Shown here piece after piece: positions 3,060 through 8,672 of a DNA stretch of 64,000 bases. Origin of the DNA: Syncephalis fuscata S228 (Eukaryota > Fungi > Zoopagomycota); the NCBI GenBank assembly GCA_025786725.1, contig JAHLTZ010000040.1, positions 62,001-126,000 of the forward strand, given 5' to 3'. A program made the position numbers and the translations under genes. The notes under the pieces were generated by a model. The model did no database searches. It was not told the DNA's origin and saw nothing but the letters and a program-made list of their open reading frames with translations. Within the stretch, counting starts at the first letter, position 1. Every line of letters begins with the position of its first letter.

Positions 3060-3652
3060 TCACGTATTTTCTTTATTGTTTTCCGGCCATTAATACTACG
3101 TATTCTACACCACTATTCGGTGTAGAACATACGACCACTATTACTATTATTGCTACAATCTGTCATCTGTTCTTTCGCGTTTCCCTCTAACTCTTACGCA
3201 AGCACTTGAATATACGTTGTCACTCTGCGTGCACATACAGTAGTTTATGATTGACTAAAATCGATTGATAAAAACATGCTATTGATAACAAACTAAATAG
3301 CTGGCTTGTTTTTTGTATTTAATCCTGAATTGATCACTATAATAATAAGCAATTTATAATGAATAATAAGTGATAGTTATATATTATTATTACAAAATGT
3401 ATTGTTTTTATTAATCTATTATTGATGCTATTATTGTCGATATTACGTGTTTTATTATTAAAATCATAACAAATTATTTTTACCTATTAATTTCTTTCTT
3501 TCACCTCCAATACTTTTATTACCACTGATAACTATCCCATTGGTGTTTATAACACTGGATTGTCGTGTTGAAACAATTACTCATTAAATTTCATTGTTAT
3601 TTGGCGTGTTTCTGTTATTATTAGTTCAATTATCTATTGTAAACGTTTGGAC

Positions 3653-6600
3653 ATGGAGATTGAATTCGCTAAAAGCTTTGTTTATTTGCATCATAAGCCT
3701 GATGTACCACTGGAGGTTATTCGGCCCAGCGCTGATAAACAAACGCTTCTCGTGCAGAATATCGGCTCTAATGATGTAGATAGGTTAGTCTGAACGATGA
3801 ATATTTCTGTAAATATACTAACAATAGTATATATCTAGCACGTTTAACGTCGATTATTGCGTCGATACTCTTGATAACCAGGATCATTTACGCGTCCAAG
3901 CACATATTAAAAACTTGGTTGAATCAGTGTGTGAAGGTATTCGTAATACAAATGTCCATATAGATGTATATACTGATTAACTGACTAATTGATTAATTAA
4001 AAGGTATTAGCGCTAGTGTATTTAGTATGAGTGCTAGGTAAATAGATCAGTTGGTGATCCAACTATTATTAACACGTCTATTTTATCTATCTACGCAATA
4101 ACTAGTCGATGCACCTATGATAGAAGTACAGTAGCTATACAAGCATTGGAACATTTACAGCTTCAATGGAATAAGCATCCAGATCGGTATCAAATATCCT
4201 ATGTGTAAGTAAATAGATACTTGGTTAAAACACAATATCTTATAACAAGTACTAGATTTATGGGTATTACTGACACTCGATGCCTTGATATCTCAAATGG
4301 ATCCACTATTGACGGTCAGTCATATAGATAATCAAATACTTTAATATTAATACAAATCAATAGGAGAAATATTGGAAAAAGAGGGTCTTGATCGATTTTA
4401 CGAGAAGGTGAAGGGCTGTGATAGCATTAATAAACTAGTGGCCCGTGGTAAGTAGCAACAACTACACATATTATATTGAGTATGGATTAATAAAATCAAT
4501 AGGGTGTTCACGACCCTCACTAATGAGTATTCGAGTTGAACGAATTGACAATAGTCCTACTTGTGCCTTTCTTTCATTGGTAAGTAGCAATAAATGAGCT
4601 ATACTATTTAGTTAGTACTATGTTAATTATGATTAATTGAGTAGGTAGATCTTGGTCATTCTGAATTTACATCAAATCCATTGGTGGATATACAGAGCCC
4701 CACTTCAGTCAATGTGCTTTCTAGATCCTTTGACGTATTCAGTGAGTACTTTTCGATTAATATTAATAGATATTATAACAAAGGCTATTATAGTGCAAGT
4801 AGTCCGTTATGGTTCACAGTCTACATTCAGCGGCTATCTTCCTACAAAAATTCAATGTTGACACGTTTGACGGCTAGTAAGTAGTATAAAAACAGCCATT
4901 AAGCCAGCATGGCTTATTTCTTTGATAGGTGCCATTGGACAAAATTGTATGACCACCTTTATATTCCATATTGAGGTATTACTATACACACCATTTAAAC
5001 ATTGGCAATATTAATAAATGTATAGGCCACCAAACCAGCTGCACTACCAGAAGCTACAATGGCTATGAAATTTGCTGAAACTGCCCGTAAGATCCGTTGT
5101 CAATTGGTAAGTTAAATGTGCATCTATACTGTATCAATACAAATAACCTATTATAATTAGGCGCCTTCCAAAATTGATCTAAGACTGCCGTATTATGAAA
5201 AGAAATACCGGGATAATTGTGATGCCATCGAAAAGATGGAGGTAAGACTAAACTTAGTCGATTAATAAACAATAATTGCTAATAACATTTACTAGGAGGA
5301 GAAAATGAATAACAATTTAGGAAATGAACAAATAAACGAGATTAAGGCTCTGCTTCAAGAGGAACAGGAAAGCAAAGCGAAGCTTTTAACTCGTTGCAAA
5401 GTACTTGAACAAGAACTGGCATTCACTGCTGAGGATCTGCAATTTCAGCGTGAATTATATTCAGCTGAGGTAATTGTTTATTAATACTTGGCTATGATAA
5501 GCTAGATTAATGAATTATATTAGGCGAATAGTAAGATTGATGTATTAACGAAGGAGACACGTATGAAAGTATCACGTTCAGAGACCGAGTCTATTTCTGC
5601 ACAAGAAGCAATAAGACAAGCTAACGTTCAGCTAGGTAAGCCATTATAACTATACAATATTTATCAGCATTTATTTATACCGTTGATAGCTATGATTGAA
5701 GACGATAAAGAGGCAGCGTTACAAGCAAAAGTGTTACTTGAAAAGATGTTGAATAGCGCCAAGGTAAATAAATACGAATTAGCTTAGTGTTTACTTACCA
5801 CTATAGGTGGAAACACAACGAGTTCTTACACTTAACGAAGAATTACAGCTAGCTATTCACAAGCAGGAACAATCGGCGCAAAAAACAGAACAAAAGCTGA
5901 ACCGAGAACTGGTAGAAATGAAAGAGAAATATGAAGCGTTAAAGGACAATTATATGGATATCAAGACAAACAATGAACAGCTAAATCAGCAATTGAAGAC
6001 GGCCCAGTCTCAGCTGGAATCAACGGCAAATACACAAGACAGAACGGCACAAAAGACGGAGCAAGCATTAAATAAGAAATTAGCTGCTACTGAAAAGAAG
6101 TATGCCAGTTTGGAGAAAAGTCATACAGCCCTCAAAGACTCAAATAAGCAATTAGCAAGTGAATTGGAAGAGGCACGATCCCAACTACGTTTAGCGATTA
6201 ATATGGCGGAAGCGACACAAAAACAGCTTGATCAAACGTTAAATCAAGCTGGAGAGGCCGCATCTTTGACAAAGAATATGCGTAATGTCGAACAAGAGAA
6301 TGTCAAATTAAAGGTATGCTGATCATATTGATTTATCATTTTCTAATCGGCAGTTATTTAGTTTGAGATAGAACAGTTGACTAAGCAACTGGCTCATACG
6401 ACCATTAAGATGGACAAGTTAAAAAAGAAGAAACAACAGCCAAATACAGTAGCCAAGAATAATAATACTATTAGTGAGAAGGTAAATAGTCTATATTAAC
6501 AAATGATCAAATACTAATAATAGATTTACTATAACTATAATGAAAAAGACTCAAGCTAAACATCATCGGCCGTTACTTATTCTGCAATGATGGTACAAAG

Positions 6601-7333
6601 TCATAGTGTTGAATCTGATCATCCAGACACAGATAATGATGATATGTTTATTGATGATGCTGCACCAAAGACATCCAGTGGCAATAATACGACATTGAAG
6701 CAGTTGGCCAATGAGAATGACCAAATGACTGTTCAACCAAAACAAAGTCGTCCCAAGACTAAATCGGCCGAGACAACTAGTCTAAATAATACTGCTGCTT
6801 TGCCTAAACGAACACCTGGTCGTCCTAAAAAGTTGACCACAGATACAGATGGCATGATGTCACCGGCTAATAAAAGTCTACGGCTATCAAACCAAAGTCA
6901 GTCAAGTCTAAAACACCGAGTCTAGATACCGATGATACATCGTCAGATGGTTTACCACCATCCAATGCAAACACTACAACTAGCACGAGTGCCACAATGG
7001 TAAGTGCCAATACATTTAATTACATTTTTGTAGAACAGGTGTATTAATGCTATATTAATTAGCGTAAGCCATTGCATCAAATGGCCAGTAATACTGCACC
7101 CAAAACAACACTGCCACCGGCTGATGGTAAAAAACGCCGTAAACTTATGAATAGTCGTGTAATGATGAATATTAAGGTAAGTAAAAACACACACAGTGTA
7201 ACCATATAGCTACTATGCAAATATAATAACGCTCATTCACTTATGCACATTGTAGAGCCCTGATACAAAACCATCTAATCCAACATTACCTGGTATTCGC
7301 ATTGGATTCTCTTACAAGCATCCACATATTTAG
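3653..7333 (+). CDS. Degenerate kinesin motor-homology protein with long coiled coil and basic/AT-hook-like tail
   Basis: Spliced exons give LSLVDLGHSE (cf. LVDLAGSE), YLP[Y]KNSMLTRL (cf. IPYRDSKLTRL), SAIGQNCMTTFI (cf. SLGGNxxT) and EATMAMKFAETARKI (cf. ETLSTLRFAxRAKxI). Coiled-coil exons span ~5160-6480. KRTPGRPKK lies near 6810-6835. The start codon is uncertain. Confidence 0.8.
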
Positions 7334-7561
7334 TTTGTTATTGGCTGAGTTATTTCATACGTAGCGTTTAAAGTAAATTTTCCATTGTTATCTTCCATTA
7401 TTCATTCATATTATGGTCTTTCTACCAACATTAATAACATAATCATTATAAGCAAATGCATATATATCGAAGCAGAGCTAAAATAACCCTTTAGTATGAA
7501 TTGAGCAGCGAAACAACGGGTGGTTAATAATCGTGTCTCGATGAACGAGGTCTTTGCTGAA

Positions 7562-8092
7562 TTAGCGAAGACGACGGGCTTCACGCTCAGACTCGAGCAA
7601 GCAGAGGACATCGTTTTCACGGATTGGGCCCTTGACGTTACGGATGATTTGACGATGGCTGTCGTCCATGAGTTCAACGCGGACCTGGGTGACACCACCA
7701 CGGGAGCCGGTACGGCCGAGAACCTTAAGAACGCGAGCAAGCTTGACTGGTTGTTTGTCCTATATACATACACAGATATATTTGTAAAACGGCGCGTTAA
7801 CAATCTATTCGTCTCATCTATTATACAAGTTATGCCTATCCCATAGCTATATAATGTTTATTCTATCCACTATTAGTAGTGGCATACTATTGACCATAGA
7901 TTGGGTCAAGTATAGAATTCCACTACAATTGTCTTTTTTAACCTGAATAGTATGTATTGATAGATTCATCCATCGATATATCCATCCATCCATCCATCCA
8001 TCTACTCTGTTCTATGTATATTTATCTCTCTCTCTAGTATACTGGATGGCCATAGCTATTTGACGGGGCCATCTTGTCTGTATACATACCAT
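7562..8092 (-). CDS. RPS28: 40S ribosomal protein S28 (eS28)
   Basis: ATG-only first coding exon, intron 7760-8089, then [65 protein letters not shown]. Confidence 0.97.
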
Positions 8093-8137
8093 GTTGATGA
8101 TCTGCTGCAATTGCTGATGTGAACAGGCAAGAGCTGT

Positions 8138-8151
8138 GGAAAGAGGAGGAG
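8138..8151 (-). promoter_or_regulatory. Pyrimidine tract CTCCTCCTCTTTCC upstream of RPS28 (TOP/TCT-like)
   Basis: Lies ~50 nt upstream of the ATG. Shares CCTCCTCTTTC with the RPS4 upstream region. Confidence 0.5.
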
Positions 8152-8672
8152 CGTGATTGTGTGGTAGTGGAGGCACACCACAAAGCACACTCAGCCGCCA
8201 CTCAATCGGCAATAGTCATTCTGCACACAATCACTCATCCACACACACACACACACACACGTATGTAAAATTATAGAGTTGATTGTCAAAGTATTAATAT
8301 TTATGTACATTAAATTGATTTTAATAGTAACTAACATAGTAACATACTGAATACAACGTATAAAAGTATATATTGTTTAATAAATAATGAGGTTATACAC
8401 TAATAATTATTGAATATAATAATAATAATATTGTTAATAATAATTGTAATTTTAATACTGATATTAACCGTAATGTTGGTGATTTAGTTTGTCATAGTTT
8501 GTGTGACGATCACAATAGCAATGGTTTCCAAAATGTAGAGTTGAACACCCTTCTATATTTCATAGAGCTATTTATTGGATAAAGAAATATATTTATTATA
8601 GTGTGCTAAAATAATGTGATATGTGCTATATATATATATATATATATATGTAATGATAAGCGATTGGAATAA

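Follow-up and report, generated by a model that had tools for sequence, protein, structure and literature searches.

Can a kinesin head that has lost its nucleotide site remain a working part of a protein, and in what capacity? The question is raised by a gene on the forward strand, at 3653 to 7333, of a 64,000-nucleotide stretch of the Syncephalis fuscata S228 genome (contig JAHLTZ010000040.1, positions 62,001 to 126,000; hereafter the window). A sequence-only reading of this locus had proposed a kinesin derivative with an N-terminal head, eroded nucleotide motifs, and a chromatin- or partner-binding role. No paper joining Syncephalis and kinesin was found in the literature, and the gene encodes a real, lineage-specific pseudo-kinesin, apparently undescribed so far.

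The exon model was built from a three-frame reading combined with GT-AG sites and compared with contigs of run X1, which were taken as RNA by guess, yet are spliced at GT-AG sites; they indicate presence rather than expression level. These contigs span 3504 to 7517 and bear out the splicing of a 20-exon gene. Its N-terminal kinesin motor-homology domain (aa 1 to 297, 3653 to 5106), delimited by homology runs on the Syncephalis plumigaleata ortholog P0004, occupies exons 1 to 11 (3653-3783, 3839-3936, 4004-4037, 4106-4204, 4256-4314, 4364-4447, 4503-4579, 4645-4741, 4794-4876, 4929-4975, and 5026-5106). Exons 12 to 20 follow at 5161-5241, 5296-5469, 5524-5635, 5690-5763, 5807-6313, 6362-6481, 6549-6999, 7063-7176, and 7256-7333. 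The earlier proposal of about nine short exons at 3653 to 5106 was right in place and too low in number. Fifteen splice joints are directly visible in the RNA contigs; for the remaining five, the exon model predicts depths that coincide exactly with those observed in 6 of 6 bins (164.6, 111.7, 39.5, 110.7, 117.4, and 81.8), and RNA contig size agrees with the model too. Since this exact match includes the joint within the P-loop region, no GKT-bearing exon has been overlooked, and the possibility that a missed exon carries an intact P-loop falls away. In intron 17 (6482-6548), an AAG acceptor at 6548 is used despite a TAG acceptor at 6523, and the upstream choice would run into a stop codon.

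In the assembly as it stands, translation ends at residue 249. The complete frame of 867 aa, with no internal stops, requires three corrections seen in the RNA (4848, ∼6563, and 6873): one base is missing relative to the RNA contig at 4848 to 4849, where orthologs agree with the RNA frame, and another at 6873 to 6874, and at the start of exon 18 (6560 to 6564) the frame differs from that of the RNA contig. An acceptor at 4817 that would sidestep the first frameshift was rejected, as the RNA uses 4794. The motif PYKNSMLTRL, quoted in the sequence-only reading, occurs in neither assembly nor RNA; the assembly is short of one base after 4848. The RNA contig gives YLPTNNSMLTRL, with L12 as PTNNSMLTRL, and orthologs have PTDNSM or PTDGSM. 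The other quoted segments (TFNVDY, LVESVCEGISASVFSMSASRCTY, YVFMGITDTRCLDI, KLVARGCSRPSLMSIRV, LSLVDLGHSE, SAIGQNCMT, and EATMAMKFAETARKI) are present where they had been placed, in kinesin order and separated by GT-AG introns, as are a coiled coil of ∼330 aa and, after it, KRTPGRPKK and KKRRKL. Single-base deletions are frequent in this assembly: besides the three in the pseudo-kinesin gene, there is an apparent one in the kinesin-1 gene (L027:341-350), and there are apparent ones in other kinesin genes. Findings based on frameshifts in the S. fuscata assembly need support from reads.

Is the head a kinesin by descent? Queries for homology searches were single exons or the ortholog protein P0004; the joined spliced protein of the window was not used as a query. 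P0004 scores above the cut-off of Pfam PF00225 (30.3 bits against 29.3; E, 2.7e-7), a profile built from 87 motors finds both ends of its head in order, and hhalign aligned it over 282 collinear columns (E, 4e-5). Its PDB matches are kinesins, led by human kinesin-1, where the match extends over neck linker and neck, and all 41 PDB matches obtained with the 80-aa end of the head are kinesins too. A six-frame scan with PF00225 gave no match at the locus, and the head exons taken singly matched no Pfam family. The case shows that genes of this kind escape standard kinesin inventories. Language-model features lie nearest kinesin clusters, at 0.89 only. Single-sequence AF2 gave no usable fold (pLDDT, 32). 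With canonical kinesins in the alignment, the P0004 head reached a pLDDT of 64 and a pTM of 0.66 in a compatible fold, a partly circular result from a sequence without six skipped residues; this alignment-biased model is nearer to canonical motors (Z of ∼20) than to Vik1 (Z of 12.6). Descent from kinesin-9, which occupied the top Foldseek rows, is unsupported, with an rmsd of >20 from the neck helix. [quoted passage not shown]

The roles of the kinesin nucleotide motifs are established, and their positions are invariant in the 65 canonical motors used for comparison. None of GxxxxGK[ST], SSRSH, and DLAG occurs in the six frames of 3400 to 7500, and GxxxxGK[ST] is also absent from the spliced frame, in agreement with the eroded P-loop and switch I and altered switch II noted earlier. 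At the adenine-binding RxRP, YLHH stands instead (3683 to 3694), the position reading VYLHH in both the window and S. plumigaleata. The P-loop remnant, SVFSM-SASRCTYDR, lies across intron 4038-4105 (4015 to 4124); P-loop, alpha2a, and L5 together amount to 9 residues, compared to ∼25 in canonical motors, with no Gly-Lys and no GKT. At this site the S. plumigaleata DNA encodes MSAG-RCTYDR, matching MSAS-RCTYDR in the window. In the switch I remnant (G-CSRPS, 4447 to 4519), the 14-residue L9 loop is deleted and Ser-Arg is kept, invariantly in four genomes where covered. The switch II remnant (VDLGHSE, 4645 to 4665) has His in place of the catalytic Gly234 and Pro in three orthologs (DLGHSE in the window; DFGPAD, DLGPSD, and DLGPSE in orthologs). 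These losses are common to all covering orthologs, which means four genomes for the two switches and two for P-loop and RxRP, and the sequences that replace the deleted P-loop/L5 and L9 are nearly invariant across species. An active motor would be expected to have a P-loop, switch I, switch II, RxRP, and a basic tubulin interface, and the head fails in all five. With RxRP, P-loop, switch I, and the Gly of switch II gone, it is not credible that the head turns over ATP as kinesins do, and it very probably keeps the kinesin fold while neither binding nor hydrolyzing ATP in the kinesin way, as proposed from the sequence. Around the former pocket lie the His-His pair (3683-3694) and conserved Cys residues in what is left of the P-loop (4107-4124) and of switch I (4505-4519), and T92-, S202-, and D231-like residues may persist; there could conceivably be a metal site or a disulfide.

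Loss of catalytic residues could also mean that the gene is decaying into a pseudogene, or that an ordinary kinesin is concealed by errors of assembly, and the three assembly frameshifts and the empty PF00225 scan at the locus would fit either. Orthologs argue otherwise. A stalk-exon query, also used for the exhaustive HMMER search, retrieved RKP24574.1 of Syncephalis pseudoplumigaleata (locus L031) and a JGI metagenome fragment (L032), and a word search added the S. plumigaleata protein P0004 (L033). Each of the three loci is followed by rps28, as is the gene in the window, and at L033 the gene is also preceded by the PAK kinase that lies before it in the window. Over exon pieces, head identity with P0004 is 67%, and the dN/dS of the head is 0.09 relative to S. 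plumigaleata, 0.076 between two relatives, and 0.074 between the window and L032, the last figure including one short spurious piece; synonymous sites across the compared species are near saturation. The head is more conserved between orthologs than the stalk, which indicates that the dead head is under selection. RNA contigs that restore the 867-aa frame, depth arithmetic that excludes an extra exon, motif losses common to orthologs, and a dN/dS of <0.1 leave a pseudogene or artefact only a very slender chance, and the check for orthologs under purifying selection (head dN/dS, 0.07 to 0.09) came out in favor of a functional gene.

The gene is single-copy in the S. fuscata genome, and metagenome scans and word searches, of limited sensitivity, found no ortholog beyond Syncephalis-like loci. 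The public annotation of P0004 leaves out an exon of 18 nt (L033:6407-6424), which has a GC donor and codes for RCTYDR, and it stops short, at 413 aa. In S. pseudoplumigaleata, exons 7 and 8 are inverted at the start of the contig (L031:1-270), probably an amplification chimera, which truncates the public protein. The introns around the P-loop remnant differ (3937-4003 in the window; L033:6300 and L033:6425-6484 in S. plumigaleata), each species having one that the other is without. At the 5′ end of rps28 (8081 to 8172), a short stretch of the window is conserved, the three related loci being 80 to 85% identical to it at the DNA level.

Whether the head still grips microtubules is a separate matter. 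The L12/alpha5 segment (4835 to 4869, in the RNA reading) lies in the exon most conserved between orthologs (23/26 identical), and the alpha4-L12-alpha5 exons are 72 to 88% identical. To this extent L12/helix 5 is the best-preserved part, as had been stated, and its conservation is also compatible with retained microtubule binding. The tubulin-contacting basic residues, however, are replaced. Y277 has become T, R278 is N in the window and D in three orthologs, and K281 is M; K237 and K240 are lost, N255 is S, E250 is changed, and R321 is T. K256, R284, E311, and a basic alpha6 are retained, so that among K237, K240, K256, R278, K281, and R284 only K256 and R284 are kept. The L11-alpha4-L12-alpha5 region has 3 basic residues and a net charge of 0, where canonical motors average 9.2 basic residues (never fewer than 7) and +5. 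With these residues replaced and this charge lost, canonical microtubule binding by the head appears doubtful, and the label “ATP-independent microtubule-binding” is not supported.

These substitutions bear directly on one alternative, in which the dead head would bind microtubules without nucleotide, as a foothold, and tune the processivity, speed, or direction of an active N-type partner. Vik1 and Cik1, the nucleotide-free partners of Kar3, bind microtubules (PMC4338441, PMC3384419), Vik1 tightly, at 12% identity to Ncd (PMC3384419), and the conserved alpha4-L12-alpha5 exons, the four retained features of the tubulin face, and the retained neck linker and neck helix are in keeping with such a role. 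Against it stand R278 as Asp in three orthologs and Asn in the window and the loss of K281, K237, K240, N255, and R321, and we regard it as rather unlikely. Like Vik1/Cik1 (PDB 2O0A), the Syncephalis head is predicted to have a kinesin fold without nucleotide site and is shortened; unlike their C-terminal, kinesin-14-type, microtubule-binding domains, it is N-terminal. Judged by this architecture, the protein is not a Vik1/Cik1 member, which upholds the separate origin suggested earlier.

Beyond the head, alpha6, a neck-linker-like strand, and the start of a neck helix (KFAETARKIRCQL, then DLRLPYYE) are recognizable at 5026 to 5200 from PDB matches and the model. The coiled-coil stalk (∼aa 310 to 645; 5200 to 6420) is 36 to 58% identical in blocks to orthologs, below the head. 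No stalk paralog was detected in the S. fuscata genome, a match on contig C328 being an unrelated ankyrin-type region. Stalk length varies between species, S. plumigaleata having a tandemly expanded heptad block (L033:8460-8900).

The tail is otherwise unalignable between orthologs, and three motifs in it are kept in four genomes. They resemble a D-box (R[KP]PLHQ[MV], 7063 to 7083), a nuclear localization signal (NLS; KKRRKL[ML], 7129 to 7149), and, near the C terminus, a PP1-docking RVxF motif (G[IL]RIGF[SA], 7292 to 7312), the labels being assigned by consensus only. The D-box-like pattern, chosen after it had been seen, has a chance of 0.005 in shuffled tail, and the RVxF-like motif, which fits the loose consensus [KR]x(0-1)[VI]x[FW], one of 0.028; Gly at the x position of RVxF is atypical. 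The AT-hook-like KRTPGRPKK (6806 to 6832), which is also the sole full CDK site, is not conserved: its core reads PGRPK in the window and QGRPR in genomic L031, where exon status is unsure, and is absent in L032 and L033. The chromatin-microtubule tether considered in the sequence-only reading rested on this AT-hook and loses its footing. A homodimeric static tether or crosslinker, with head or basic tail on microtubules and tail on chromatin or nuclear envelope, would still suit the long stalk, the Lys-rich tail, and the conserved NLS-like motif, and KIF26A binds microtubules without ATP hydrolysis (PMC10585591). Absence of the AT-hook in two of three orthologs and the eroded tubulin-facing charge make it improbable.

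The parent family is less clear. Canonical kinesin-1, -3, -4, -5, -6, -7, -8, -10, -13, and -14 also occur in the genome (families assigned by reading), and the head is 14 to 22% identical to canonical N-type kinesins. Like those of kinesin-1, -7, and -8 (PF00225), it is predicted to have the kinesin fold, and it shows their order of motifs, beta8-alpha6, a neck linker, and a neck in the corresponding place; unlike them, it has lost all catalytic motifs and has L5 and L9 deleted. The best PDB and pairwise scores, neck included, suggest a weak lean toward kinesin-1 ancestry. No intron position is common to the pseudo-kinesin and any paralog read, and in the tree, whose set did not include Smy1, the pseudo-kinesin branch is saturated and has no supported placement. 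Descent from kinesin-8, considered in view of the best nonself match in the genome (E, 0.09) and of a Klp5/6-style tail, is unsupported. The canonical kinesin-1 gene (C157:1-627, L027) is cut by a contig end after ∼120 residues, and a Pfam scan did not find the remainder. Several giant-virus contigs (L048 to L054) carry single-exon canonical kinesins, and L053 retrieves kinesin-1 proteins as its closest named cellular matches; they served here solely to seed a search.

A kinesin-1 origin would accommodate a cytoplasmic, microtubule-independent adaptor working with myosin V or vesicle cargo. Smy1, which showed no motility, ATP binding, or microtubule cosedimentation (PMC2141741), is the non-motor precedent, and with Smy1p and the kinesin-11 group (KIF26A/B and VAB-8) the Syncephalis protein shares a divergent N-terminal head, here predicted from sequence to lack motor activity, and possible kinesin-1 ancestry. 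Smy1 keeps the R278-equivalent Arg and has a P-loop region, whereas the Syncephalis head has lost R278 together with part of the P-loop. The kinesin-1 lean is weak and the branch saturated, and the conserved NLS-like and D-box-like motifs suggest nucleus and mitosis, so that an adaptor of this kind appears quite improbable.

The closest match in design is probably KIN-B of Trypanosoma brucei, whose N-terminal head has neither a P-loop nor switches I and II and is missing many alpha4-L12 residues; KIN-B fails to cosediment with microtubules and, in the chromosomal passenger complex, pairs with KIN-A as a parallel heterodimer (PMC10987093). The Syncephalis protein likewise has an inactive N-terminal head without P-loop, switches, and alpha4-L12 residues, followed by a coiled coil, and, by inference, a nuclear and mitotic setting. 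KIN-B belongs to another supergroup, with no sequence link expected, and unlike it the Syncephalis subunit continues into a long disordered tail in which D-box-like, NLS-like, and RVxF-like motifs occur. The novelty implied earlier for an N-terminal dead head was consequently overstated, KIN-B already being one (PMC10987093). What the Zoopagomycota contribute is apparently a further independent origin of a dead kinesin head.

We therefore favor, at a probability of roughly 0.4, a KIN-B-like, nuclear, nucleotide-free, non-motor kinesin subunit that acts as dimer partner or scaffold. This reading draws on the intact, spliced, expressed ORF, syntenic orthologs, low dN/dS, lost nucleotide motifs, and eroded tubulin-face charge, as well as on the three conserved tail motifs, the KIN-B precedent, and the known mitotic kinesins with PP1 carried through RVxF (PMC6406801). 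A kinesin paralog in the Syncephalis lineage would have become a non-motor subunit that enters the nucleus, is turned over with the cell cycle, and uses neck and stalk to dimerize, its partner most likely being a catalytic N-type kinesin and its tail carrying regulators such as PP1. The conserved dead head would then be a protein-binding or motor-tuning surface rather than a strong microtubule grip, as in KIN-B with KIN-A. A heterodimer role appears plausible from the sequence; the canonical kinesin set makes possible partners available, and an N-type partner is favored because with a C-terminal motor (e.g., Kar3) the two heads of a parallel coil would lie at opposite ends. Among the inferred roles, confidence falls from nuclear, to dimeric through the stalk, to partner of a catalytic N-type kinesin, to carrier of regulators. 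Against the KIN-B-like reading speak the weak lean to kinesin-1, a cytoplasmic family; the shortness of the tail motifs; the absence of a detected stalk paralog in the genome; and the strong conservation of the tubulin-facing exon, which would suit retained microtubule binding as well, Vik1 being able to bind despite its low identity to Ncd (PMC3384419).

Syncephalis is an obligate mycoparasite without genetics, and follow-up is limited to in vitro and heterologous work. A bolder version, which would come as a surprise, is that the protein is the first N-terminal, plus-end-type counterpart of Kar3-Vik1, with a rebuilt, low-charge microtubule grip, a canonical N-type kinesin as heterodimer partner, and PP1 delivery under APC/C control. 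Dead kinesin heads are known from few lineages (Vik1/Cik1, Smy1, KIF26/VAB-8, and KIN-B), and the present one is an unusually clean case, in which P-loop/L5 and L9 are physically deleted and their substitutes are nearly invariant. It provides a natural experiment on the use of a kinesin head in the absence of ATP turnover and on whether an N-type dimer with one active head can be useful.
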